Assembly: GCA_002189035.1 (NCBI GenBank)
Contig: NEEC01000013.1
Span: 558,001-622,000 of the forward strand
Source: Utricularia gibba
Lineage: Eukaryota > Plantae > Magnoliophyta
Direction: 5' to 3'
DNA length: 64,000 bases
The stretch's first letter is position 1, and every line of letters starts with the position of its first letter. This document shows, piece after piece, positions 6,939-55,992 of the stretch. Under the pieces are notes generated by a model. That model did no database searches, was not told the origin of the DNA, and worked only from the letters and a program-made list of their open reading frames with translations. The position numbers were made by a program, and so were the translations under genes.

Positions 6939-9237
6939 CTATTATTTAACAATCCATAGCATACCTTCAAAGTTTTTCATAAATCTCGAAAATCTATGTA
7001 ATAAATGTCTCCGAATCCTTAGAAATGTCCCTAGATGAAGTACAATTTATCTTTTACCTTCGGGAGACAATTGGACTCCTCTTCTCCACTCAAAGTAATG
7101 ATGGTTTGAAGTTCACTTATCTACCTTGCATTTAAATGGTAAAATATGCTTATATCAAGATTATTCATCCAATACAAGGAATCTACTATAAGCACAATAC
7201 TTCTATCATTCTATTTCCAACATCGAATTCATTGTTCATCACCAACTAGAATCTATGAGTCATATAATCAACACACTTTCTTGAAGCTAGAAGCACAACA
7301 TTTACCACAACATCAATTCACAATTGTCCATGTTTATTGAATCATGTGCAAATTCTAGGATGAAAAAAATGACTACCATGAAGAAGAAAAGGAAATTTGA
7401 TTATATTGTCATTGATAATAGGAAGATTTGACATTTGGTACTCTAATCTAATTAATAAAGAAAAAATAAAGTAAAGTAAATAATGCCTATATATATGACT
7501 AGTGAAAGGCCAAACTAGTTTCTTGAAGATCTCAAACACACTTATGAGATCTATATACCAAAGGATAGTAGTTCATCTTAAATTGCATCATTTTTTTTTT
7601 AGTTTCAGCAATATGTAAACATCTTTGAAGAAACTGTGCATCTATTTTTAATTCATCTCGGTTTCATATTCCACGTGTAATGGCATATCAAACGAAATAT
7701 TTCTTTGATCTTACCTCTTATTTTCATTAAAATGTAAAAATGATTAAAGTTCTCATCACCCTTTATAAGCCACTAGTTTAAATTGTTGACAATATATGTT
7801 TGTGATAGAAAATATATTTCCTATATTTTTATATTTTTTATTTAAATTAATATTGTAGGATATTCAATTAGTTCTAGTTTTTATTATAATTGTTTGTATA
7901 ATAACGACTCAAAAGAAGACTATCATCTATTATTTTACAAGAGAAAAAGAGAAGATAATAAGGAAAATATTATAATCATTTACATGGCTTCTAATATCCT
8001 TGATGTGTGTTCAAAGTAGCAAACATCAAATCTAACATTTGAATAAGAAATAAATGGATAATATGAATTGAAGTATGAAGGAATATAATCTTAAGAAGAA
8101 ATTTAGGATTGCAACCTCTAATATGGAAGTATCTGAGTAATGAAAGACATGATGTTTATAAAGCATACTCTTCTCAAAAAACCATCAAAGGCATTTTTAT
8201 TATTCATGGTTTAGCAAGTTATTTTTCTAGGATGGAATATTGAGAAAATAAATATAGTGTATGTTGCCTTTTTGTTATTTTTTTACTAAATAAAAGAATT
8301 AAATTGATAATGATGTCTTCACAATTCATAGCTTTTAAAATTGGAAAAAGTGAATAATGGAAAAATTATTATTTTCTTACTCATATAGGAACTAATCCTT
8401 GTTGACAACATAATAATGCACTAAAATCTTGTTGTGCATTGTCGGATTTGTTGAATAATGAATACCGGATATGGAGAATTAGAAGATGATTGAAATAATC
8501 TTAAGTTGCAATATCATGATTGGTATGATTAGATATCTACAAGACTTCATTTGATAAGAAAGGATTCAATTGAAACTTAAGTTTGTGATATTTTGTTTTG
8601 GATGTATCCCAAATTGCTATGTTGTAAAAGATAGACATTCTAATAGAATTTTATCATTTTATGGTTGAAACAAATTGACATTGTATGTTCAATTTGATTG
8701 ATCTCTATTATAATTACTTGTGATACTTCCAACTATTACAACTTGTTTCAACATCAAATTTCTGTACTGAAAGCAAATAAAATAAGATTACGAAATAAGG
8801 TGGAAAATGGTTTTTTGTTAATTGTACTCTCGTGAATATTGAAGGTGAACTTATAAAGAAATACACATATGATAATATCATCAATGACTTCAAAATGTTC
8901 ATGATTGCTGAAAGAAGTTGCAAAACTTTTCATGATTCATCTATGTATTGATGAAACCAAAGGGATATAGTTCAGAATCTCTATTTTCTGATTGAAGTAT
9001 GATGAGATAATTATAAAAATAAATCTCTTTTCAATCTCTCGCACTTATATCTATTTCAATGTTGGATAGCAAAAATCTATCAATTCTACTCTTTTTTGTT
9101 TAAAAAATATATACGATTTCAAATTTCTTCTTTGTAGATGTAGATCTTTTAGTCTCTAGGAAACTCCTCATGGTTTACATCACTTATATTTCCCCCAATT
9201 TGAATTCATAAAAACCATAAGCATATATAGTTTTCCC

Positions 9238-9450
9238 TAGAGGTGGATTCGGTTCCGAACCGTACGGTTTCGTTTCCAAACCGAAAGGTTCCAACGAACC
9301 GTCGGTTCCAAAACCGTGGTTCACTGTAGACAACGGTTCCGGTTTCGGTTCGAAACCGTACGGACGAAACCTTGAACCGAACCGAAACCGGAACCGTACG
9401 GACGGTTTTGGTTCAGAACCGGAACCGAACCATAACTGGAACCGATCGGT
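9238..9450. repeat. Left TIR and subterminal repeat array of the hAT element
   Basis: Dense AACCG/CGGTT/GAACC repeats in both orientations directly after the TIR, as in Ac/Ds-type subterminal regions. Confidence 0.9.
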
Positions 9451-10000
9451 TACTGTTTATAGGTGTTTTCGGACACCCATATGAATCATTGTGGGTGTCT
9501 GGCAGTGAAATTTATAATAATAATTATTTTTTTATATTTAAATATTATCAAACAATATATTTAATAATATTAATTTTTGTATTTAACTAGATATATTATG
9601 TAATCTACTATATTAATTTATAAAAAGCTATAACTTAAATTAATTGATAGACTATCTCAATAAAATATAATTAAAATCAATATAATTTATGACTTAAATA
9701 AATGAAATAAATAATGAAATTATTAGTATTTGAATGTATATTTGATAAAATTAAATTTTTTAAAACAAATACAACAAGATTACAAATTATATAAAATGAA
9801 TAGAATTATTATTTATATATTTATTTTTTTAAAATGAAGATGTTTATATAGTTGTTTTATATAATCTTTTGTAAGTATTGTGTATTTTTCAAATTAAAAT
9901 AAAACAACATCTATTTCATATATTTTGGAAACAAAATATTAGAAGGATTAAATACATTGCATTTTCAAAATTAACATCACATATTTCACATCTCTTAATA

Positions 10001-10190
10001 ATCGTTAAGGGTGTCCAGGCTCCAGAGAAGATCCAGGCACCCTCAATAACGGATCAGAGTGTCTGGACAACCTCTAACCATAATCCTAATTTTAAAGTGC
10101 GTGCTGTCTTCGTTAAGAGTGTCCAGACTCTAGAGAAGATCTCAGGCACCCTGAATAATGGATCAGAGTGCCTGGACGACCTCGAACGAC
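10001..10190. repeat. Two about 110-bp-period tandem units each containing the CCAGGCACCC...GAGTGTCTGG palindrome
   Basis: Units start at about 10001 and 10111 (CGTTAAG(G/A)GTGTCCAG(G/A)CTC(C/T)AGAGAAGATC..CAGGCACCCT). Confidence 0.85.
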
Positions 10191-10430
10191 ATTCCTTATT
10201 CTGAGGCTCACGCTGCCAAGGCATTAGAGGCACCCTTAGAAATCATTATATATCTCCCAAATGAATTTAAAGGATCACTATTCACTAGAGCATATTTCAC
10301 ACGATGCATATGGGAATTCAACGAATGTAACACTAACAACAACATAATTGTCGACTAGAAAAAAAGTCATCAACAAAAATATTTCAACTACAACATAAGT
10401 GTTCAAAATAACTAATATTAGAGGCTTCCT

Positions 10431-12689
10431 TTAACAATCTTGTAGGCATGCATAATACTCCCATAAGGCATGTCCCTCACGTATGGGAGGCTGTCCTATT
10501 TGGTTCTCATTAACATAACTTGGAACATCATGAGTATATCGTAATCCTTCAAGGAAAGTCCGCATCTCACCATCAACATTTAATGATGCATCATCCCTAT
10601 TAGTATGCGAATAGGGACTTGGAAAAACAGCATTATTTTCCTGAAAAATTAATGGTTAGTTTTGATGTATAACCAAGTGTATGGTAGAGTAGAAAAGCTA
10701 AAATGACTTACCGGATTTTTCATTGACTTGTGAGGCGAATCATCAATCAATAAGGTGTTGTGACAGCCATATCTTGAGTTTAATCCATTGTTGACATCCC
10801 ATACACGACTCAACTCCTTCATATAGACTGTGTTGCTAGGATTGCTGTGAACACGTACACCCGTATTCGTAGTCATCGTTTGATCCCAAACAAAAATGAG
10901 TTTATCAAATAATGAAGGTGGAAAGACCCATTTAGTGATTGCTTGTAGGTGCTCCCTACAAAATAAATCAATTGCAAGAATTGGCACCATTCTAAATACC
11001 AACCAAAAAAAAAAGTAACATACGTACCCACCACGGGATGACCATAAGGCTACATCAAAATTATCTATACACCCTAATAAAGTCACGAGCATATGGACGT
11101 AGAAAGACTGCATAAATTACACTAAATAAGTGTTGTTTTAATACCTGATCGGCCATATATAATTTTATTTGGAGGATTTGTGACCTTGACGGTCCAGCCC
11201 TATACACGATGTCTGCGAGCACACCATTGACATCCAAGATTATCAGCTTTCGTTGAGGCTCAGAGGCACTCAAAGAGGGTCCGGTATTGCCCAATGGCTC
11301 TCATACCAATCCAACTTAGAGTGAAGCTCTTCATTTTCCTTTGTTATAAATTCAAGTCTCTCATCTACATCATTGAGACCACGTGTGAGCTCGTCCCCTT
11401 CAACATCATTACTTTCTTGTGTCCTCTCATTCTTAGACAAATCTTCATTCTTTTGGGATACTCTAGGATTCTTCAATACACTACACTAATAACGTTTTGT
11501 CCCCGGTGCATCCACAAATTATGGTAAAATGTCAATAAAACTCTTTTGCATACTGGAGAAAAGGAGTATAAGATCTTGTACATCCCTCTTGTGCAAGGTA
11601 TCAAATCCTACAATAAAAAAAGATTAATTAACAATAGATTCAACAAAAATATTCAATAAAAATATTAAATATGAGTTATTTCGACAAGTCTAAACTAAAA
11701 AGCAATAAATTAAATACACATATTCAAAAAGAGTATTGAAAAAAAATATTCAATAACACTAAACTGTATAAATATATACTCAATAAGAAAAGATTAAAAA
11801 ATATTCAATAAAAATATTCAATAATGATAGATTGAATAAAAATAGATAGAAAAGTATTCAATAAGAATAATTGAATAAAAATACATTGAAAAAAAAATCT
11901 CTAAAAAATAATGAATAAGAACAGAATAAAAAAATTAACAAACAAATTTAATTAGATTAGATCGAATAAAAGTAAAATCTGAAAAATTTTCAATAAAAAC
12001 AAGATTTAATAAGATTAACTTCACTAAAAATATTTAATAACAATAGAATTAATAAAAGTAGATTAAAAAACGTTCAATTATAATACATTCAATAAAAACC
12101 TTCAATACAAATATTCATTAAAAATATTCCATATTTTTATTCATATTTCTTATAGTAATACAATGAAAGATTTACCTTTTGTCTTGCATACTTCACTCGA
12201 ATTAGGATGCATTTGAGGAAATCTCGTTTCCATTGGAGGACGTATCCAAACAAAGCTTGTCCACCATTCCTCAAATCCTCTTCTCACGTCTGTCACTAGT
12301 ACCAACTCTTTTTTCCCCTTTAGTGTGTAGTGGTTCTTGTTTGGAATCCTAGAGCATACACTCACAGCAAAAAAATAACGAAGTTCCACCTCAAGAGATA
12401 ACTCCTCACAAATACTCACAAAAGCTAACACATATGAGATAGATCTTGGAGTTAAATGAGATAATGGAATTGCTAAACATTCTAATATTTCTTCTAAAAA
12501 GGGCAACAATGGTAAGCGTAAACCTCAACGAAAATGTTCCGTGCTTAAGGCAAATCCCATTGGACCCACACGGTTTGGAATTTCACTCTCAATCAACTCA
12601 TTTGGTTCTTTGTCCCAAATCTCATACTCATCCGGTATCAAGAATCTAGTTCTCAATTTTTCAGAAGTATATATCTACAAAACACCCAT
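10431..12689 (-). pseudogene. Spliced cargo gene: Transposase_28-like domain + coiled-coil + NIF/FCP1-like HAD phosphatase domain (about 500 aa reconstructed, disrupted)
   Basis: Exons 12674-12176, 11607-11145, 11107-11028, 10955-10712 and 10640-10431 with GT-AG introns. N-terminus: LRTRFLIPDEYEI...GLRLPLLPFLEEILECLAIPLSHLTPRSISYVLAFVSICEEL...WWTSFVWIR. C-terminus: RKLIILDVNGVLADIV...VFLRPYARDF...FDVALWSSR...LIFVWDQ...NTLLIDDSPHKSMKNPENNAVFP...IGQPPI..GHALWEYY. Stops at 12525, 11519 and 11486 (plus TAG at 12675-12677 if the ATG at 12689 is the start); frameshifts near 11297, 11180 and 11070. Confidence 0.85.
11640..12120. repeat. Degenerate short-motif array (TTCAATAA / TTGAATAA) in the 568-bp intron of the cargo gene
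   Basis: Eight exact TCAATAA copies between 11650 and 12100, plus several TTGAATAA/GAATAA variants. Confidence 0.65.
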
Positions 12690-13159
12690 AGGTATTGTAT
12701 AAAAAATCAAACTACAATAATTGGACAAGGTATTTCAATTTGGAACACAGATTAGCAACCATGATGGAAAATAAATCACATACCTTGTTTAATTTAAACA
12801 ACACTCCAAGTAGGTGGTGGGACTGTGGGGGCGTTCGGTCGCTTTCGGCTGGGGGGGCATGGGGGAAAGAGGTAAGAAAATTTTCTTACCGGATGGGTGG
12901 GGATTAGGGTTGTCTTAATTGTCAACGTGGGGAGTGGGTAAAGTGGGGACTGGGGTGGTGATGTGTAGCGCTATGTATGGGTGCGTGAAGAGTTGGTTTA
13001 ATTATCGAAATCATTAGGTAATGATTACGTGCAATATGTCTCTAGGTTCATCGGTTGTCAGTAATTATTTTTGTTGATTTCCAATGAGAAGTGTCGCTCG
13101 CTTGAATCGATCCGAACCCACTGTGTAATTTTTTTGGAAATGCTGTTTAATTACTCCAA

Positions 13160-13860
13160 TTTTGAGGCACCAGAGTCGCTAATGTGGGTGCCTCCGTCAC
13201 CCGTAAAATTATATTTTCTAGGCACCCGTACCCTAATATTTGGGAATTGCGCAATTTTAAAAGAAGACTTAATTTTCAAAAATATACCATTGTTTTCGTG
13301 CATTAATTGGATTATAAGAAATTGAAAATGAAATTTTTTCATATATCCTAAATATTACAAAAAAAATTAAATGGCATGTTAATTAAACATTGAAATAAAA
13401 TTTTAGTAAATAAAAAATTTTCATGTGTCGTTTAGACCATCTTCCAGACACCTACATTGTATCGTGTGGGTGTTTGGAAAGAGACTAGGATTCCCTTTTC
13501 CAAGCACTCACAATGCCTCGCGTGAGTGTCTGGGAAGACTAGGCGAGACCATTTTCAGGCACCCATATTTGCACATGTGGGTATCTGGGAGTGTGCAATC
13601 ATATTCCAGGCACTCTATTTTTAGGAACGATAAGGATCGAGTCCATTATTTATTTGACTTAAAAATATTGCACTCTATACGTACGTTTTCTAAGGATCGA
13701 ATATTAGTGTATAATAAAAAAGTGCACTCTATATTTAGGAACGATAAGGATCGAGTGTATTATTTATTTGACTTGAAAATATTAAACTCTATCCTTATGT
13801 TCGATCCGTATGAGTGCAACCCTATTCCAGGCACCCACATTTGCGCATGTGGGTGTCTGG
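13160..13860. repeat. Array of palindromic units TTCCAGGCACCCACA-N8-TGTGGGTGTCTGG between the cargo gene and the transposase
   Basis: Units at about 13163, 13442, 13498, 13552, 13604 and 13824. The period is about 55 bp in the core. The unit at 13604 is followed by a 114-bp-period tandem duplication (13611 and 13725). Confidence 0.88.
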
Positions 13861-13985
13861 TAAGGATGCATCCAAACGTTTTGGTAAGTGCTCAGATCAT
13901 ATAATTTTAATGAAAGGCATGAATACAACGTACTTCATCTTCATACAAAGTAATAGTACTTCATGAAGCACACAATGTTATCAAA

Positions 13986-16083
13986 TTAGGAGTCTTCAAC
14001 TTCATCTTCACTTGAACTTGAGGATAATGTTTGATTTTTTTTCAATGATTCTAGCCAATCCTTTAGACAAATGCATGCCTCCAGGGTCTCTACGTTCAAC
14101 TTGGACCGCTTGTGATTAAGAACTCGTCCCCCTGCACTAAACGCACTTTCGGATGCCACTATACATGCTGAAGTTGTTAGAAGATCTTTGGCCATTCTAG
14201 CCAAGATAGAGTATGTAGTAGAATTTGTCTTCCACCAACCCAATATATTAAAGTTGTCATCATCAACACCCTCAACAATAGGAGTATTATTGTAAAGTGT
14301 AATTTGATCAACAGAATTTAATGAAGATGATAAAGAGGATGACACAAATGAGCTATGTTTTCTACGAATAATGTCCATCAGATTGCGACTGCCAAACATC
14401 GAATTATTACATGTTTTAAGAATAGGAACACTAAGATCACTATATTTAGAAGCATAAAGGGAATATTTAGCATGTAAAATGTTGTTAGCATCAACATCTA
14501 TTTCTTCACAATTTTTAATGGAAAAAGCAACATCATCTACACTAAATGACTACGAAATGCATTCAAGTAATGTTTTCACACCTCTAGATTTAACCCGAGG
14601 ATTCAAAATAGGTGCAATAAGAAACAAATGTGGGATTTCATCAAAATATTTCATATTTTTCATATTTCGCACTACATCCACCAAAAAATCACAATCAGTT
14701 TGATGATCATAAAAAGCAAACGAAATTTTACAAATACATGAAATCACAAGTTGAGAAGTTGGATAATAAATACCACTCAAAATTTTAGTACAAGAATAAA
14801 ATGTTTCTAGTAAATTTACTAAACCTCTTATTTTTTCAAAAATAGAATGAGTCAAGAAATTGAAACCTGTAAAAGATTCACAAAATTGAATAAGAACATT
14901 TTCATAAGGAATCAAAAATTGTTACATATCATATATAGAATTCCATCTAGTTGGACAATCATTTTTAAATTTTCGATAACAGATATTTCTTTTTGACAAA
15001 TCCTCTTAAAATCATCTCTTTTGTTAGGTGTAGTTCTAATCATACCCACTAAATCATGAATAGGAGTTAAAAAAATTTCACATTCTTTTAAACCATTTTG
15101 AATACACAAATTTAAGATATGACAAGTGCATCTAGTGTGGAAAAAAATGCTATTCAATATAGGATTCATGCTACTTTTCAAAATATCAATAGCATTTGTA
15201 TTTGCATAGGCATTATCCAAAGAAATAGAAAAAATCCTATCAGATATTCCATAAAATGCTGTGACCTTTTCAATGATTTTAGCAATAGAAAAACCATTAT
15301 TTGGTGATGGCCATTCTTGAAAAGCTAAAATTCGTTTTTGCATACACCAAGAATTATCTACCCAAGAACATGTAATAACAATATAACTCTCATTGTTACA
15401 ACCTTTCTAACCATTACAAGTCAAACAAAAATTACATTGTAGAGATTTAAAAGTAGAAATTAAAGAGTCACGCATGTTTTTAAAATCCTCAAGTGCCATA
15501 TGATGCACGGTTTTCCTGGAAAAATTTTTGTATCCCAATTGAGCTTGTTTCAACATATCATTAAAAGAAGATTTTTCAACTAATGAAAAAAGAAGTTCAT
15601 TAAGTATCAAATAACACACCACACTTACTTGAAAAAGTTTATAATTAAAAATAAAATTAGATAATCCCACACTATTATCACCCCTAAACATAATCTAGTT
15701 TGACGAAACTGTGGTAATTTATCATTATGCTTCTCCCTAACATGCCTCTTATATGTACCGGTTCCCCAACCCTTTTTGAAAGTATACTCTTAACCACAAT
15801 GTTTACAAGAAATTTTTTCGGGATTAGAAACAACAAAATGCTCTCCAACATCCAAAGAATCATCACTAGAATTTTTTGATCTTTTACGAAAAAGGAGACT
15901 CGATGAGGTTGAAGAACCCACTTCTCGAGGACTAGAAAAATCATCATGTTCGGGTAAGGGACCACATTCAAGTTCTTGTAAAAATTGAAGGCCTTCCCCA
16001 AAAGAAAATTCTCTATTATTTTCAAAAACACAAGGTATAGTAGAATCAGATTGAGAAGAATTTTGTAAACCAGACCTCTCCAT
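13986..16083 (-). pseudogene. hAT (Ac/Tam3/RICESLEEPER-like) transposase, disrupted
   Basis: BED finger ISCKHCG*EYTFKKGWGTGTYKRHVREKH; SISLDNAYAN; HTRCTCHILNLCIQ (CxxH); DUF4413-like IYYPTSQL...AFYDH; C-terminal dimerisation domain FNILGWWK...ILARMAKDLL...ASESAFSAGGRVL. Several stops and frameshifts. Confidence 0.95.
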
Positions 16084-16811
16084 GTTGTAAAAAATAAAAA
16101 AAAACCTGTTACCCTGCAGGCCTCATCAATGTCTCCAAGTGGAAATTTGAAACTTGATACTTCAGAGTATCTCCAATCACGAGTTGTATGCAGAAGCTGC
16201 AATAGAATTATTTCTAGTAATGAGTGATGAGATAATAAGAAAAAGTAATGGAAAACTATAAGACAGCCATATCATATATATAGATAATTTTTTTTATTAA
16301 ATTAATAGCAACGGATACTTTCAAATCCATGTGCAACTCCACAGTATGCACAATCACAAATGCATGTACTAGCCGTTGAGATTAATATATACATAAAAAA
16401 TATATTTTAAATATGATGCTGCCACGGCAATCTTCACATGAGTATTTTAAATATATATTTATGTTTAAATATGCATTGTACTACAAATATGGATAAATTA
16501 GAGATATTGGCAACGCATAACTAGTTATTGAGAAAACTATGTAGGTAATGAAATGTTAAAATATTTATTTGGTTGAACTATCGAAATTATTCAATAAATT
16601 TGTGTAATTTAGTATTTTTCTATTGAGGTTATACATTTTATATTTATTAATTTCATTCTAATTTTATAATTTATAGTATATAAATAAATGAAATAAATTA
16701 TTAAAGTGATAAAATTATCAGTAATTGAAAACATATACAATAAAATTACATTTTTTCAGACACCAACATTAGTTTGTGAGTGTTCAGGAAGAACATCTGA
16801 AAGATAGAGAC

Positions 16812-16968
16812 CATTCCCTGGCCACCCGCATTTAATCATGCCTCATGTAAGAGTGTCATGAGGGTGGCTGAGATCATTTTCCAGGCACCCACATCTATTG
16901 TCAGTGTGTCTGGGAAGGAGTGTTTCAGAAGATTTTCTAGGCACCCACTTCCATCGTATGGTGTCTGA
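16812..16968. repeat. Three further palindromic CCAGGCACCC units near the right end of the hAT
   Basis: Units at about 16815 (diverged), 16878 and 16935, about 60-bp period; same consensus as 13442-13860. Confidence 0.8.
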
Positions 16969-17046
16969 AATCATATACATTTATTTATTTATTTATTTAT
17001 TTAATTTTTTAATTTTTTTCTAATTTTTTAATTTTTTAATTTTTTT

Positions 17047-17240
17047 CGGTTCCGAACCGTGTACAGTACGGTTCATACACGGGTCAGAACCGTCGGTTCC
17101 ACGGTTCCAAATTTGCCGAATCGAACCGAAACTGTATGGTTCCGGTTCCGGAACTAGAACCGTACGAACATCCACCTCTTGAAACCAAACTGGAACCGGA
17201 ACCGGAACCGCGGTTCCAGTTCGAACCGAATCCACCTCTA
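17047..17240. repeat. Right subterminal repeat array and TIR of the hAT element
   Basis: Dense GAACC/AACCG/CGGTT repeats ending in GAACCGAATCCACCTCTA. Confidence 0.9.
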
Positions 17241-19997
17241 GTTTTTCCTATTTTATCAACCTCTTTAAGTATTGTCCCTTTTTAGCATTACTCAAATTTG
17301 AATGTTGATTTTTATTACTTTCATCGAAAATAAACAAGATTACATTATTATGATGATGAAGCCTCATTATTTTTACAAAATCATCATGATTTTCGTCTTC
17401 TTAATCTATTGGGAGTGAAATCCTATTATCTCCACCCTCATTTCATATCTCATTTGTCTAAGCATGCTCAATGCAAGTATATTGACCAATTCTTTTTCTT
17501 CAATCTTAGCTCCTTTGTTTTTGCTTAAAGCCATGCTTCTTTTTTTTTTTTTTTTTTGAAGATTTTGTTGTCCTTTTACAATTTTTCTTAATGATATTTG
17601 TTTTTAGTTTAAAATTTTTCGTGTATCTACTCCCCTCTAATAAATAAAAATTTTCAATTCATTGCAAGATATTAAATTTTTTATATCAAATAAAATTTAT
17701 AAAGTCCTAATGCATATGAATGAACAAATCCCCATAAAAATGTCAATGGCTTCAGAACGAATTCAAAAAACTAAGTACTTGTTGTGCTGAAGCGCATGCA
17801 TTCTGGTATCAAATTCAATTTAGTATTAGCTAATAATATCATGGCTTCAATAATAATTATAAAAAAAAAGACAATAGAGTTCTAATTCCAATTGATAGAA
17901 CAAAACTAGAATACCTTGAAGTTTTAGTAATGGAATGCTCACTCAACTCATGGTCCCAAAATACTTATACATGCTCTCATCTTAAATGAACCAAATCATT
18001 TCTCTTGATTTCAACTTAGCATCTTGTATCATGCTCTCACATTTGCAAATCTGAAACCAAATCAACGATCCGTTGCATTCCGTCTTCCCGAAACAAAGAC
18101 ATTTGTAATAATCTCAATGCGTTGGAGAGCTATCCAGATCTTCAGAAAAAGACATTGTATGTTCATTTATTCTTGCCTTCTTCGAATCCTCTTATTTTCT
18201 TTAACAATATTCACAAGCAATTTGTTAAAGCCAAGGATTTGTGAATCAGACAAGCACATGTATGAAGTTCAAATTGGTAAAAAACATTAATCACATTTAA
18301 AAAGATTTAACTCAATCAATTACAAGCAGTCCACAATATCTTGTATATGTATATCACTTAATGTTTTTTTTATATGAGGCTACTTGCTCTAATACCCGCT
18401 TTTAAGTTGAATTGACATTAATTAGGTTAATATTTTTTTTGGTTATTATAAGTATTGCTCAATTTATAGATAAATTTTATTATTATCATATAAACCTAAT
18501 GTATGACCTTGCTTTTTTTTAATCGAAACTCATAACAGCACATAAGGTCCATCTTAGCCACCTAAGTTTTAAGTCAAATGTTCTAATATTATGTTGAAAT
18601 AAAAAATCTGATGGATCGGACAATCACATTTGAAAAAATTAAAACTAATCAATTATTAATGATTTATAATCTCTTACATATTAATCATATTATTTTAATT
18701 TTTTGATATTAATTATTTTTTTTAACAATTCCAATGTACTTCAAGCCTTCGTTTTTCTTAGCAAATGAATGAATGCAAAAAAGTAACATTCTCATGTTGG
18801 CAATCCCTCCAAGGTGGGAGGGTGTACGGACGATCGGAAAGAGGCTTAGGATGGATGCTCGGTTAGGTGAGGGTTTTTCCCCTTATTATTCACTTGGAAA
18901 AGTACCTTTTCTATTTTTTTAAATAACCAAATATCATATGTTATTTCCTTGTAATTTTGTGATTAATTTAAACTTTGAAATTAATAAAATCACAATATAA
19001 AGCTATAAAACTATAAAGAGTGAACGAACTCTGAAAATCAAATTTCAAAATTTTTATGTTGTATTTTACTATTTTTTATCATCTGTAGAAACGGCTACTC
19101 TTCTTGTGATGGTTACTTAGGTTTTGTAAACATGGCACATAAAACTAACAAATTTTCGTCACCTCTCTTGGCCGAAATTTCGCCCAAACCGCACAACTCA
19201 AATCCGAATGACGAATCCGGAAAATGAGTTTAAGCTTTTTTGGGTCGCATGATTAGAAAAGTACCTCGTCCCCACCCACGCATTCCGCGTAGGGTCCGAG
19301 CATATAGCTTTTCTTCCTCCAACCAAAGCAAAGCGAGCTCCCCACGACCACTACGGCTACACGCAATTGGCTCGCAGATGATTGTCGTCCAAAAAAATAA
19401 AGAAACCCCTTAGTGGGCATCAACTTTTGTAGCAGATAGCAGCATCCCCCCACTCACCTCTCCAGATATTTTGGGTTTTCACTTCCTAGTTACTTTCATT
19501 ACCGCTCACACTCTACGAAGTTTAAGAGTGCGGTAATAAACCGGATCTCGTACAGGCGTTGACAGGAGGGAGTCTCGACTCTCGCACCCCCCTGGTGTTG
19601 TGCTAGGCTTGGGGGGTCCAAGTGTTTTAGGGAAAGAAGAAAAACCCATGGGCCCCGACGAAAAGGCAATGTTGCTTTCCACAAGACACTGGGAATCCTC
19701 TGTTCACACTTCATCTTCGGCCAACATTCCAACGTTAACATTCCATTGGTTAACCCTCAAACCCAATTGTAGTACGTGTTTTGTATTCTAGAAGTGAAAG
19801 AATAATGTATCTAACCAATTTATCGACGGCCGTGCATTGTGTATAGGGAAAAAAACAATAGCCACAAGAAAAAGAATAACATACAGAATTTGAACATATA
19901 TTTTGGCCCAAATGAAATTCCGTGGAATTCGAAGTCCACAGGAGAATCTAACTTCCTTCATAAAAAGCCTTGAGCTTCACACAACTTCCTTGGGCGA

Positions 19998-33599: not shown

Positions 33600-36500
33600 G
33601 CATGAATCCAAGGCATTAAGGAAGTGAACTTTGCAAGGAAAAGTTCAAAACTGGCTCGAGAGGGTGACATGGGATGCTGAAATTACAATAATTATGGAAC
33701 ATGTAAAAGAGTATGTATGGGATGTGATCATTGAAGGGACACATCGAACATCACTTAATCATGATAGGAAGAGAAATAAACCCTAGATGATGACAATGCC
33801 ACTGCATCCAGGTCTATAAAATGATCTTGTATGGTGCACTCAATGGAAGTAGCTTTTGAAGATCTAATTGCTTTCATAATTGTAGTAATTAAGACAACAA
33901 CAATTGATGGAAGTATGTCTAATGATGACTGAAACAGTTAGTTCATAATAACCAAAAAAATCTGTTTCCAACAAAAAAAATGACATGCTTTTTAATCATC
34001 TATTGCACATCTTGCATACCCTACATTGTGCTACATCCCTTTTTCCAAGCGGCCGACATTATTGATTCTTTAGCAGCTGATTATATTTGAAATGCTTTTA
34101 TCTATAGAACCCATATTTAAAAAGTCACAAACTTTCTTCAAGGATAACATGATATAATAGAAAGATAAAGTAATGAAAAAGAAAAAAAACTTATAAAAAA
34201 AGGGTGCATGTGACATTCTAAAAAAAAAGGCTATCATCGCCAGAAGGCAGCTTACATATATAGAAGTATTGGCAAACAGGAGCTGCACTATGTCAATGAC
34301 CTCAAGTATAAGAGGTGCACACTATCAAAAGAATCCTTCATTTAAATTCTTGAGCATTTACTAGTGTCACTGCTAGAACGACATGATTCAAAAATTTCTA
34401 TGTTAGAATCTGTGAACAATAACTCTTAATGCACCATTGAGATGTTATCTGAAGAACATCATATCTTAGATATTCTCAGGCCACTCAAAATGCCTTTTGA
34501 CAAGTTGGGACAAAAGACATGAAAAGTCTTGATGAATCTGCCCCATAAGCTACAACAAAGTCATTCCAAGGGAATTTATCTCATGTTGGAAAGTTCCCTC
34601 CATGCTCTCATTGCAAAAAAAACCAATCATAAAGAGAATGTTTCTATAGGCTGAGTGCCTTTTGTGACAAGTGTAGAACCCTTGGACATGTGTCTAGAGT
34701 ATGCAAACACTCTCAAAAGGCTACAATGGTGCAAGAAATCGAACAAGATGTTCAGCATGATGAAATTCCATCTGATGCTGCCCCTGTGACTTAAGTGAAG
34801 TTCACTTGTGCCATGGCTTATCTTAATGAAGACTTCAGTGATTCATGACCAGATGGAAAATATGTACAGTTGAAGTGCTCGATTTCAAATACTTCAAAAA
34901 TAAAATTTTAAAGTCAATTGAAGTACGTAACAATTGGTGATTGGATAGTGGTTGTACATCCCATATCACAGGAAATAGGGACTTTTAAAGTTCCTTAGAT
35001 ATGACTTGGCTCAAGGAGCATTCCCTCACTAAATGGAAGTTTCTCTTTTCTTACATTTTTTGATGAAATTAGTGGATTTTGCAGGGTGTTTTTCCTACGG
35101 ACTAAGAATGCCACATTCGGAGCATTCAAATATTTCCAAGCTGAAGTGGAAAATCGCTTTGGGATCAAGATCAAGAACCAGGATAATGGTTGTGAGTTTT
35201 GTTCAACTTCCTTTATACTTCATCTGAAAATTAATGGAATCATTCATCAGTTGACCGTTCCATACAATCTTGAACAAAATAGTGTAGCTGAATGCAAAAA
35301 CAGGACAATGACGAACATGACCAGATGTACGTTACTTGAGAAACAACTTCCAAAATCGTTATGGGCAGAAGCTATAAATACTCAGTGTATTTACCAAATA
35401 GACTCCCCACAAAGATTGCATTGTATCAGACCTCATATGAAACCTAACATGGCTCTTAACCCTCACCAAGAAACCTTAGAGTATTTGGTAGTATTTGTTA
35501 TGCTCATGTTCTTGAAGGCAAACGAGATAAATTATCAGACATATTTGGGATATGTATTTTTGAAGGGCAGACTTGCAAAGGCTACTGGGTGTTGAATCCT
35601 TACACCTTGAAAGTCACGGTTGCTCACAACACCAAAGTGAATGAATAAATAAAATGGGATTGGACTAATAAATGCCTAGTGCATGATGCCTTTAGTGCAT
35701 TCGAAAGTCTCAAGAAAAGCAGACGTTTCGTATGGTTGAACATGATGCATAAGCTACTCAAAGGACTAGATCCCCACATGACATTTAACATCAATGTGGT
35801 ACTGTTGTATATGAGCCAAAATCAACCACTGATGTTGCGTCATATTTCAATTTATTTGAGTCAATTTCATTGATAGAGTATTAGGATTATGTGAACTAAA
35901 ATAGGAAAAATACCAAAACATGCATTGATCAAGTTATTTTCGGTAAAAATGCGACTTGAGCCATTTTTCCCTTAGTCCAAGTGCAAGGTGGTTTTATTGT
36001 TCTTCCCACCCCGTGTACGTTGGGTCCATTTGGGTTGGATTGCATTATCCAACTAGTTTGCGAAGTTGTCATCAGCATAGAGGCAAAACTTAAATTAAAG
36101 GTCTGAATGTTGAGGAAGGATAAGGAAGGTTGGTATAAAATAACAAAAAGATCACAACACATGCAACGAACTATGGCTGGCGCATGAGACTAGAGTGAAT
36201 AAAAAAAGGAAAAGATCTACTACCTATATAATTCCTTTCTCTCCAAAATATCACAAAAGTAATGAACCTACCAATCAACCAATGAGAGAATTCTTCTGTT
36301 TCAAAAAGATTTTTCTCCCCAAAGAGCGTTTTTGTGGTTAGAGTGGGAGAGAAGATGAAGGAGAGGCGTTGTAGTGTGATAGTGAAACTAATCTCATACG
36401 TCATAAGTGTAGCTAAAATCTGAATGATCCACAAGGAGGCCTTGGAATTTGTAGTTTAGGAAGAAGAAGGCAAGGAGAACTTAGAACTAGAGAATAAAAC

Positions 36501-48100: not shown

Positions 48101-51100
48101 TCATAGCAGAAAACATATGCAACTTCATATGATCCTTGCCATTTGGATCTTAATTTTCAAGGAAAAACTTTCAAAGTGGTATCATATAAAATTTTCAAAA
48201 TACTTACTCTCATGGAAGTATTTTACCTTCTCCTTGTAGATCAAGTGATTAGAGTAGGCATTCAAGTGGATCTCCTCTAATTCATTCAAATCCAGTAGTA
48301 TCTTTTCTCTAGTTTGATCGCTAACCAGCTTTATGATGAATCTTCAATGGAGGGTGGCAAGACTTAATATAGATCATCCGAAAAGGAGACATTTAAATGG
48401 GATTTTTGTATGATGTACAATAGGCCCATAATGGATCATTCAACCCGAGGCTCTAGCCTCTTCTGTTCGAATTCACCATTTGTTTTAGAATGCATTTGAT
48501 CTCTCAATTTTAGTTCTTGGCCTACCCATTTATATGAGGATGCTTAGCTATAGAAAGACAATGATGAACTCCGAATTTTGTTAGCATGGCCAAAATAAGA
48601 ATCTTGGGATAACAAAAACTGGGAAAAATGTGAGAAGTTAGGAGATAATTTACAGTCCTGTTGTCATCTTTCTCACATGCCATAGTTTCCACCCACTTGG
48701 AAACATAATCAACAGCAAGAAAGATATAGGTCTTTCTCTTTAACGGGGGGAAAGGTCTCATAAAGTCAATCTCCAATCATCAAAAATCTCGCACATCACA
48801 ATAGTTGAAGTGGCATTTGATCCTTGAAACCTATGCCTCCACCTCTTTGGAAATTAGGGCATGCCTTGCAATGAACATATGCATCTTGAAAAAGTGTGAA
48901 CCAATAAAATTCAGCCTCAAAGACTTTGTTAGCTATGACCTTTGGACCAAAATGCCCCACATAGGGTAAGTCATGAAAATGAGTAAGAATAAAGCTCACT
49001 CTATGAGGGATGCACCAACAAAGGATTTGGTCAGGTCCAATGATGCTTGTCGTTTCCACAACAAATTTTAATATTTTTTTTTTAAAACTCATAAAACACA
49101 AAAGCGTAATACGGGTGTCGAACACAGGGAGTTGTTTTTGAGTGAAAGGTAAGGTACACAGAATACAACTGTCACGATTTGTAAATGGTTTTGAAAGTAA
49201 AAAGGTGTGAGAAACGTTAATGATGAAACTTGAGTAAGGTAATAAGAGGGGTTTGAACAGACAACAGAAATAAACGTAAGCGATGAACCTTAAATAAAGT
49301 AAATGTTCCTAGGATTGGAATCCTGTCCAGCTATGTTCGTTGCGCCTTCACTCTTCTCCGGTCTTCTCGAGTTCTCGGTTATAGGAGTAAGGAATTGCCT
49401 ACCCACCGTTACACTCTCTTGCAAGAACGCATGGGAATAGCCCCATGTTGCTCCTCCTTGGATGAATGTGAGAATAAGAGGTCCTGCTAGCGTACCCTCA
49501 TGGCCGAATTGCGCACGTGTGCCCGAGTGTTGCCAATAACTCAATGAGTCCAGATACGAGGTCACTACCTGTCCATTGATCCTGAGGTACGGCCATAGAC
49601 AAAACATTGTCTACCTCCTACCAAAAGGGCTCGAGTTGGTGCTTTCCACCTTGCTCCTCTCCAAAATCCGAGGGTAGTGATCAGCTAACCATGAACCTTG
49701 AATAAGGGGACTGTTACAGAAAGACTACAACATAGTCGTGCGAAGACATACGAAACTCATTCGGATTCAAAGAAGAGATGAAGATAAGCTAACGAAACAT
49801 AGATTTGGGAGTGTTCCAACCCAGAAACGGAAGTCTCTAGCCGTGAACGACTATACAAACTAAAGAAAACTAAATAAGGTTCTAGAGAAAAGCTAAAGGA
49901 GAGTTCCTCTAGAGAGAGAAAACAAAGTCTAAACTAAAACTGAAAGTAAAACTCTCAGCTTGTCTCAACATAAGTGAACTTCAATGAGAGTGTGAGCTTT
50001 CGTGTCCCTGTGATTCTGCTGAACTTGGGATGACTTGCAAGCAAATGTCTGCTCTGACTCTCGTACGCTAATGATGTCTCCTATCAAAGACTCTCGTGTT
50101 CCGTATGTCAAGGCTCATGATTAGGTGTATGCAGTCTTTCGTAAATCAAGGGAATGTTGGCTCGGGAAGATTCAATTTGTTGCCATTTGATGCCCTCTTT
50201 CTCTCACTTACTGCCATGTGTGCACCTCTAGAAAAACTCAATTGAAACTAGTAAAATTAATAGATAAAATACAAGATTTAGGATAATTACCCTAAACTAG
50301 ATAAAAACCTAAATCTCATATTATAGACTCCTAATTAGACACTTTTAATCATAATAAGCATAAAATCAACCTAGGAAATAGTAAGAAAATGACACTTAAC
50401 ATCCAATCTCTCATAGGTATGAGTCACCCCAAACGTAGTGAATGCTATCACTCCGCAATGTCTCCTTTTGATAATGCTAGAAGTCCTCCGAGAACTGTCC
50501 TATTGCAAGAAAATTCACAATGTCTATATAAAAGGGGGTTCTGTTATGAATCATGAATAAGTGCTCATCATGGAAGTTGTTGTTAATGGGGCTGGATGCT
50601 TCTTCATAGGTGATGTAGTTAAGGTGATCTACAACTAAATTCTCACATTCCTTCTTATCTCGGATTTCTATATCAAACTCCTGGAGCAATAGGATCCATT
50701 GGATATAACGAGATTTGGAATCCTTTTTGTTTAGGAGATATCTCAATGCTGCATGATCGAAGTAAACAATGATCTTGGCTCCAAGCAAGTAGGGTCTGAA
50801 TTTTTCCAAGGCAAAGATGATGAAAAAAAGCTCCTTCTCTATTGTTTTGTAATTCCTTTGGGCATCATCCAAGAACTTTGAGACATAGTAGATCACGTGT
50901 GATCCCTTCTCCATCTTTTGTCTAAGGACTGCTCCTAATGTTACATCACTACTTTCACATATTAACTTAAAAGGCAAATCCCAATTAGGTGGCTAAACTC
51001 TTTGAGATCTACACTTGTACTAAACTTATTTGTGTTTTATATTTTTTCTAATTAAAATTCATTGAAGAAATTACACGCAACACCCTTGATGGCATCTAAA

Positions 51101-55295: not shown

Positions 55296-55681
55296 CTACA
55301 TCCACACGGGTGGAGGTTCATTCAAGTCGATCGGCAGCCCCGGGTAGAAAATTCGAGGTAGTCTGGAGGCGGCGTTGTCCCGGCAGCTTCGGGCGGCGGC
55401 GTGTGAGTCTCATTCGCGTGTGCGCGGAGGAACTGGTTAATCATCAAGGAATGATCGGAGGGGAGATTCAGATCCAGAGACGGCGGCGGGAAGTTGGTCT
55501 TGGCCTTGGCCCCACGTAGGGACCTCGCGGCGCCGTCGTACGCCAGCGCGGCTTCCTCCGGCGTGTCGAAGGTCCCGAGCCAAACGCGCGTCTTCTTCCA
55601 CGGGTCCCGTATCTCCGCCGCGTACCGACCCCAAGGCCGCTTCCTCACGCCGCGGTAGTGTGCCTCACGCGCCGAGTTCAT
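55296..55681 (-). CDS. ERF12-like: AP2/ERF group VIII repressor, ERF12-like; as written it stops at 55322 (119 aa) because of a 1-bp frameshift, and would be 128 aa if repaired
   Basis: [73 protein letters not shown]. The shifted frame gives [14 protein letters not shown], matching the ERF12-type C-terminal EAR motif. Confidence 0.93.
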
Positions 55682-55906
55682 CGGCAAAACAAAACAAAAG
55701 AACCAGGAAAGAGAAACTGGTAGCTGCTTTGCCTCTGTTCCCCAGAGAGAGAGAGAGGGAGAGAAGATGGAAGAAAAGAAAAGATCGTGGGGGGTGGCCG
55801 AGCGGTAAACAGAGAGCAGGAGCTTTAAAGGAGGAGTGGGGGCGAAGTGGGGCCCGCGCAGTGAGAGCCCGCCCGTAATCGTCGGCTGGTGGACGGCGGA
55901 GGAAGC

Positions 55907-55992
55907 AGCCGCCCTTTGCAGGGGGCAGGGGTAGCGGCGGTAAAATGGACCATTGGAGGCGGGGACCGCTCTCACTCACTGGGCCGCCGCCG
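55907..55992. promoter_or_regulatory. GCC boxes upstream of the ERF gene
   Basis: AGCCGCC at 55907-55913 and GCCGCCGCC near 55983-55991. A TTTAAAG TATA-like element is near 55825. Confidence 0.45.

Follow-up and report, generated by a model that had tools for sequence, protein, structure and literature searches.

A Transposase_28 exon and a NIF-type phosphatase-fold gene body inside a decayed hAT transposon of Utricularia gibba: one gene or two?

Can a DNA transposon carry a gene that joins an accessory domain of retrotransposons to a phosphatase? This question is raised by a 64,000-nucleotide stretch of Utricularia gibba DNA (assembly GCA_002189035.1, contig NEEC01000013.1, positions 558,001 to 622,000 of the forward strand), here called the window and numbered from its first letter. 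An initial annotation placed within a hAT element of this window, between 10431 and 12689, a chimeric gene fusing a Transposase_28 domain (T28 or TRP28; PF04195) to a NIF/FCP1-like phosphatase domain (NIF; PF03031). Our analysis bears out the presence of both domains as hAT cargo, while their union in one protein is not demonstrated and no relative harbors the two together. On balance, and with modest confidence, we favor the explanation that the cargo is a copy, now decayed, of a gene region distinct from the transposase gene; it would be housed in a now-dead element of autonomous type and would originally have been expressed as a single spliced transcript. On the same strand, it combines two parts that differ in ancestry. 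The first is a T28 exon, whose nearest relatives found are antisense accessory open reading frames (ORFs) of Retand-type Gypsy elements. The second, located 568 bp downstream, is a complete, intron-bearing copy of a NIF gene of the D-x-N-G type, with a leader, a HAD core, a C-terminal extension and a natural stop.

The frame in which this cargo sits is indeed that of a hAT transposon. The element covers 8003 bp on the minus strand (9238-17240) and is delimited by terminal inverted repeats (TIRs) that begin with TAG and match at 18 of 18 positions (TAGAGGTGGATTCGGTTC, at 9238-9255 and 17223-17240). No other copy of this 18-bp sequence occurs in the window, in which 0.04 matches would be expected by chance. 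The TIRs are bordered by 8-bp target-site duplications that agree at seven positions out of eight (GTTTTCCC at 9230-9237 versus GTTTTTCC at 17241-17248). Between them, a decayed transposase (13986-16202, minus strand) displays a BED finger, an RNase-H-like core and a C-terminal dimerization domain. The latter is recognized as Dimer_Tnp_hAT in a Pfam search (4e-23). The match of the RNase-H region to hAT elements is weak, and identity with hAT products of Rhodiola amounts to 51-53% at the C-terminus. Short TIRs, an 8-bp duplication and a transposase with the hAT dimerization domain are the hallmarks of the superfamily, and all of them are present here. This transposase is dead, since in-frame stops interrupt the zinc finger (CKHCG-stop), the catalytic region (LTCNG-stop-KG) and the sequence after PTRWNSIYDM, and its reading is spread over at least three frames. 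In the D-x-W block, the tryptophan is replaced by the stop of LTCNG-stop-KG and the preceding aspartate by an asparagine. A similar degree of decay is seen in the cargo.

The cargo is also bracketed by sequence of the hAT element itself, since copies of an element-specific palindromic motif lie on both of its sides. One group (CCAGGCACCC...GGGTGTCTGG) is found directly 3' of the cargo at 10031-10215, without strand assignment, and further copies occur at 9467-9502, 13170-13860 and 16864-16957. The half-site CCAGRCACYC has nine matches in the window, all nine inside the element and distributed on both sides of the cargo, where 0.15 would be expected. Neither a gag-pol region inside the element nor a convincing TIR-like pair around the cargo was found, the best candidate pair being a 16-nt AT-rich match (E 0.05); the reading of the cargo as a nested element was consequently rejected. 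Two further observations concern the repeats. The palindrome, about 36 nt long (TTCCAGGCACCC...GGGTGTCTGG) and scattered along the hAT element, could serve as a target to which the transposase, or else an accessory protein, binds. Both ends of the element carry short subterminal repeats of the CGGTTCCGAACCG type (9245-9460 and 17042-17222), whose arrangement in arrays looks typical of transposase-binding subterminal repeats. Besides, a 1.2-kb contig from another public run (L006; Logan, SRR2033663) is 80% identical to the transposase region 14078-15308, which indicates that this hAT family is present in at least one other sample.

Concerning the first part of the cargo, the assignment to Transposase_28 was confirmed. 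The exon (12177-12674, minus strand) extends from an acceptor TAG/AT (12675/12674) to a donor AAAG/GTAAAT (12177/12176), and its segment 12177-12524 obtains 32.1 bits against PF04195 for a Pfam cut-off of 26.2. T28 proteins cover 12662-12198 by tblastn (E 1e-14), and the X-masked protein model reconstructed from the cargo matches such proteins by blastp with an E-value of 2e-17. With its in-frame TGA (12527-12525) read as X, the exon can be aligned for some 150 residues with proteins named 'Transposase (putative) gypsy type' from Rubroshorea leprosula and Cuscuta europaea, and a hidden Markov model (HMM) built from the T28 alignment (A1) finds it as the sole site in the window. The TGA lies inside the conserved core, directly before GLRLPL, one of the three T28 blocks that are present in the exon together with LTP-x-SI and W..F.WIR. 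Of the conserved positions described for the family (G21, P25, L34, P46, N47 and F55; PMC11963269), with a numbering matched by eye, the exon retains G and P (both in GLRLPL), L, P (in LTP) and F (in AF), and the Asn of the 'PN' pair is an Arg in the window copy (TPRSI versus TPNSI in relatives). A search of protein representatives gave 11 weak matches, all of them T28-only. The T28 relative P0005 is antisense beside a Gypsy gag-pol; the window exon does not have this Retand-type antisense location but lies within the hAT TIRs on the strand of the transposase. The predicted structure of the domain (predicted local distance difference test, pLDDT, of 75) has no match in the PDB and its Atlas matches are limited to the T28 cluster (TM 0.44-0.52), so that the fold offers no functional hint. 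Upstream of the exon, a GC- and Pro-rich stretch (12784-12885) ends in a good donor AAG/GTATGT (12784/12783) that is in phase with the acceptor at 12675/12674. This stretch, read 12885-12784, is the sole in-phase candidate exon and possibly a decayed first exon; it contains no ATG, and the one close by (MPPQPKATERP...) belongs to a different frame.

The identity of the second part had to be established beyond its single exons. A PF03031 match had been expected; the best single NIF exon reaches 13.3 bits for a cut-off of 21.8, the domain being split by introns and frameshifts, whereas full-domain homology to PF03031 proteins is clear. Metagenomes were scanned with a degenerate DNA pattern encoding NTLL[IV]DDSP[HY]K, an 11-residue seed. 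This yielded 120 loci, and residues 271-506 of the X-masked model align with them at E-values down to 4e-36, well beyond the seed. These alignments span 170-270 residues (E 1e-20 to 4e-36), pass straight through both frameshift sites of the window copy and show that the blocks conserved across the family are kept in order. The ORFs of the relatives are themselves PF03031 members with 68-145 bits, such as Sphagnum magellanicum KAH9571219.1 (L019; 145 bits, E 4e-36 to the model), L080 (68 bits, E 2e-33) and L089/P0056 (80 bits, E 2e-25). In a maximum-likelihood tree, the window sequence occupies a long branch (1.47) in a clade of eight rows with 99/95 support, which includes Sphagnum and plant-like sequences and is separate from a 35-row clade. 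Language-model features (Atlas) point to NIF clusters for the middle exon (99 of 100 matches) and for the motif I exon (66), with no usable match for the last exon. Sequence searches of the PDB with NIF pieces returned nothing relevant, a metagenome locus search with the middle exon as query found nothing, and the AlphaFold prediction for a piece of 132 NIF residues was set aside (pLDDT 59). On the basis of homology over the whole domain to proteins above the Pfam cut-off, the NIF identity of this domain is solid.

The exon structure of the cargo differs from the one initially drawn. Instead of five exons there are four, since the 37-bp intron proposed at 11144-11108 does not exist: it is crossed by an open frame 0 that encodes VFLRPYARDFI, which aligns with VFRRPYCDDFL in the relatives. 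Likewise, two frameshifts (~11285 and ~11075) are needed rather than three. The second exon (11607-11028) comprises a linker, the acidic segment, the first frameshift, the first half of the NIF domain, the second frameshift and the motif II block. The linker (FDTLHKRD..., 41 residues, 11483-11607, minus strand) includes an ATG at 11551-11549 and the stops TAA (11521-11519) and TAG (11488-11486); together with the TGA of the T28 exon, these are the three in-frame stops that had been reported, each at its expected place. An acidic, helix-like leader follows (11273-11479, minus strand) and ends in the frameshift at ~11285. The N-terminal part of the NIF domain (11028-11300, minus strand) contains motif I as L-D-V-N-G (D at 11234-11232 and N at 11228-11226), then FLRPYARDFI, the frameshift at ~11075 and CIDNFDVALWSSRGG, which holds motif II. 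A 72-bp GT-AG intron (10956-11027, minus strand), in frame and stop-free, is absent from the plant relative L112 and has to be removed for the alignment to relatives. The middle exon (10712-10955, minus strand; 81 codons) provides the Lys of motif III in VYMKELS and motif IV in NTLLIDDSPHK. It is separated by a 71-bp GT-AG intron (10641-10711, minus strand), phase 0 after ...NP and sufficient on its own to explain the change of frame, from the last exon (ENNAVFP...WEYYACLQDC; 10431-10640, minus strand; 69 codons), which terminates as announced in a natural TAA stop at 10433-10431. As it stands, the cargo copy is a dead, non-functional pseudogene.

Two features of this gene body tell of its ancestry. 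First, the 71-bp intron shares its position and its phase 0 with a GT-AG intron of the plant-like genomic contig L112, of which L080 is an intron-less counterpart that shows the spliced form. Second, the acidic leader aligns with residues 31-79 of the N-terminal leader of the Sphagnum NIF protein (LEFLKRRNWNLHKRLDVY versus LEFITKENEELHSKLDWY), with a local score of 59 compared with 28.4 ± 5.5 for shuffled sequences, none of 2000 shuffles reaching 59. The acidic, helix-like segment formerly described as a coiled coil is thus assigned by its homology to the lineage of the NIF gene and not to the T28 side. The NIF part represents an entire gene body of host type, taken over as genomic DNA. Its identity to the relatives retrieved does not exceed 45%, and it is therefore not a recent copy of those genes. 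Some related sequences deserve mention here. The Sphagnum protein (586 residues, L019:1977-3734) has two tandem D-x-N-G NIF domains; in its cluster, one UniRef member bears the name TIM50, which was probably transferred automatically. Also, an intron-less, stop-ridden D-V-N-G NIF pseudogene on a plant-like 12.7-kb metagenome contig (L118:9439-10050) lies ~7 kb from a Copia-type reverse transcriptase motif and possibly represents a further copy of the subfamily that is retroposed or associated with a transposon.

Whether this domain was ever a phosphatase of the CTD (C-terminal domain of RNA polymerase II) type, as claimed, is another matter: the NIF/FCP1-like HAD domain is there, and its activity is doubtful. 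The canonical D-x-D-x-(T/V) motif is not found in the window copy, which reads D-V-N-G-V at motif I with the first Asp kept (IILDVNGVLADI, compared with LILDLNGLLADI in L080). The nucleophilic Asp, the Ser of motif II (WSS), the Lys of motif III (KEL) and motif IV (DDSP) are preserved. The attribution to an 'LDLNG' type of NIF subfamily was right, as D-x-N-G is read in all 29 relatives that cover motif I (e.g., LDLNG or LDVNG), so that the Asn is ancestral to the subfamily rather than a product of decay. In HAD enzymes, losing the D+2 acid strongly lowers turnover. With the general-acid Asp being Asn across the subfamily, the domain is probably a weak or non-catalytic phosphatase fold, which would bind phospho-substrates rather than hydrolyze them. 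Our literature searches on the function or activity of the D-x-N-G NIF subfamily retrieved no report, and the papers obtained for the Arabidopsis loci proposed as members (At4g26190 and At2g36540) are silent on the family.

How, then, do the two parts belong together? In their likeliest original form, the T28 exon would have been joined in phase to the NIF body in one transcript, giving a protein of ~500 residues in which T28 would bring the phosphatase-fold module to transposon DNA or to chromatin. The junction between them has several properties that suit this scenario. The T28 exon and the NIF body are collinear on the same strand, and no transposon ends are found between or around them. 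The hAT palindromes on either side of the cargo and the comparable decay of cargo and transposase also speak for a single unit. The 568-bp interval (11608-12176, minus strand), which would be a phase-1 intron in a fusion gene and a spacer if there were two separate genes, has GT...AG ends, with a good donor (AAAG/GTAAAT) and an acceptor made of a T-rich tract and TAG/G. As had been noted, its phase is compatible, i.e., phase 1 on both sides, and its splicing would continue in the frame of 11607-11273. Moreover, the reading past the donor meets a stop after 8 codons, and an unspliced T28 ORF would therefore lack the long tail that all T28 relatives possess beyond the domain. The interval has a G+C content of 16-18% and many AATATTCAATAA-like repeats; its portion 11620-12133 is built largely of degenerate AATATTCAATAA units (families D3, D5-D9 and D18), which is unusual for an intron and maybe an expanded microsatellite-like array. 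The position of the intron is not informative in T28 relatives, of which P0005 has an annotated intron nearby and P0002/P0074 have none, and gives no support to the fusion. We regard T28 and NIF as one fusion gene as plausible, being close to evenly balanced or slightly favored. The domain identities, the hAT context, the gene structure, the decay and the host-type ancestry of the NIF part are established by the data, whereas the splicing into one protein, any past function and the mechanism are what we infer.

A series of observations weighs against the single gene. A phase match alone would arise by chance in one case out of three. The 41-residue linker beyond the junction has no significant likeness to T28 proteins, 46 of 200 shuffled sequences scoring as well, and the post-junction segment was consequently rejected as a T28 homologue. 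No NIF domain was detected in the 11 T28 relatives, including isoforms of 676-970 residues, or within 1 kb on the closest T28 contig, and neither tblastn nor the HMM of alignment A1 detected T28 near the ~120 NIF loci. Upstream of 12674, neither a start codon nor a first exon could be placed. Among the sequencing runs listed as containing the stretch, none is an RNA run that could cover the 12177/11607 junction. Four sequencing runs yielded one 673-nt contig, 81% alike over 10462-10627 in the last exon and not reaching the junction; this paralogous contig is itself broken by two stops, with mostly non-synonymous changes. Together with the three in-frame stops and two frameshifts of the window copy, and with two Rhodiola hAT loci that are free of cargo (relatives through the hAT C-terminus, for which a protein search gave only hAT fragments), these results temper the fusion gene.

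Among the alternatives, the most probable is a pair of adjacent genes, i.e., a truncated T28 ORF, an AT-rich spacer and a complete stand-alone NIF gene that would start at the ATG 11551-11549 and comprise the leader, two introns and the stop. Indeed, this in-frame ATG is found 23 codons before the leader homology, at a distance comparable to that of Met1 in the Sphagnum protein (30 codons before), so that the NIF part may once have been an independent gene. The same leader-plus-domain layout, without T28, is seen in stand-alone NIF proteins (239-283 residues) and in the 586-residue Sphagnum protein, the segment after the junction is not T28-like, and no relative combines both domains. What this arrangement leaves unexplained is a T28 ORF that would stop 8 codons past a good donor, deprived of the tail of all its relatives, and the coincidence of a strong donor and a strong acceptor that are matched in phase. 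Two adjacent genes thus appear to us as a serious but rather improbable alternative to the spliced T28-NIF gene.

A still less probable view is that of a one-off transduplication, in which the hAT element would have taken up a host NIF copy and a T28 fragment as passive passengers, never functional for the element. Such gene capture by plant DNA transposons, hAT elements included, is well known from Pack-TYPE transposons and transduplication (PMC8903248). The host-type intron and leader retained by the NIF part, the lack of cargo in distant hAT relatives and the fact that every copy seen in this analysis is dead are in line with it. However, captured fragments are usually partial, while both domains are complete here: they include the outermost conserved blocks at either end and reach a natural stop. 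In addition, the low identity of the NIF part to its relatives (at most 45%) and its long branch speak against a recent capture, and the element has a transposase of its own, unlike those of the Pack type. Finally, the idea that the T28 or NIF likeness is a chance product or an artefact of decayed transposon DNA, for which the sub-threshold single NIF exons and the empty PDB searches could be invoked, is refuted by the T28 score above the curated cut-off, by the extent and E-values of the NIF alignments to PF03031 proteins and by the ordered conserved blocks.

Returning to the spliced T28-NIF gene, one may extend it to a broader and clearly speculative scenario that we consider doubtful. T28-NIF could have been a once-selected accessory gene, common to unrelated superfamilies of DNA transposons (hAT, MULE and PIF/Harbinger) and akin to the ORF that Retand elements carry in antisense. 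In such a scenario, T28 would tether a D-x-N-G pseudo-phosphatase to the DNA of the element, possibly at the palindromic arrays, and the pseudo-phosphatase would bind the phosphorylated CTD of RNA polymerase II or another phosphoprotein, thereby modulating transcription of the element or helping it to escape silencing. If true, it would make T28-NIF a transposon-side counterpart of the PMD-PP7 module of the host. The value of the present locus in this respect is limited because its copy is dead, and it represents one data point for a genome-wide census.

Outside the hAT element, the window consists of plant DNA with Gypsy fragments, an AP2-domain ORF and AT-rich intergenic sequence. These include a fragment of Gypsy reverse transcriptase/RNase H (50480-50977; PF17917, 3e-31), a weak integrase fragment (35089-35595) and the AP2-domain ORF (55325-55975).

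To conclude, the architecture described here joins two known kinds of systems, namely accessory or captured genes of transposons and modules that associate a transposable-element domain with a phosphatase fold. The combination of T28 and NIF, which had been presented as new, and such a cargo in a hAT element were indeed absent from the descriptions retrieved by our full-text literature searches. TRP28 is the hallmark antisense accessory ORF of Retand Ty3/Gypsy elements, located between pol and the 3' long terminal repeat and present in nearly all recently active members; no function has been assigned to it, it is predicted to bind DNA, and neither similarity outside Retand-type contexts nor a phosphatase partner is reported (PMC11963269). 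The window exon belongs to the same domain family and shares its three blocks, but it resides in a hAT DNA transposon, on the transposase strand, and is followed by a NIF body. Its occurrence as cargo of a DNA transposon suggests that T28 may be a portable module used by unrelated transposons. With the plant D-x-N-G NIF subfamily, the second part has in common one intron position, the Ser of motif II, the Lys of motif III and the DD of motif IV, and it is homologous to the Sphagnum magellanicum protein KAH9571219.1 over its full length, i.e., in the leader, the domain and the C-terminal extension. The host-type members found are devoid of T28 and lie outside transposons, whereas the window copy stands behind T28 in a hAT element. 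The locus also draws attention to this subfamily, which occurs plant-wide and as a whole departs by its D-x-N-G motif from the D-x-D-x-T of canonical FCP1/SCP1 enzymes. Like Pack-TYPE transposons, the element holds a host-derived, intron-containing coding sequence between its TIRs; unlike these non-autonomous elements, which have no transposase and usually carry fragments, it contains transposase remains (13986-16202), a complete NIF body and a domain of transposable-element type, and it falls outside that class. The closest parallel, by analogy only, is the PMD-PP7 module, which takes part in regulating genes and silencing transposons; MAIN/MAIL1 act there with PP7L, and MAIL3 and VvMAIL2.2 contain the two domains as a fusion (PMC7156037). 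In both cases, a domain derived from an extra ORF of Gypsy elements would be associated in cis or in trans with a partner of phosphatase fold. The complete phosphatase-fold gene directly behind T28 is a concrete candidate partner for it, as PMD works with PP7L. The components differ, with T28 in place of PMD and a HAD-type NIF in place of the PPP-type PP7, and so do the settings: PMD-PP7 proteins are domesticated host genes, while the T28-NIF pair described here is the cargo of a transposon.

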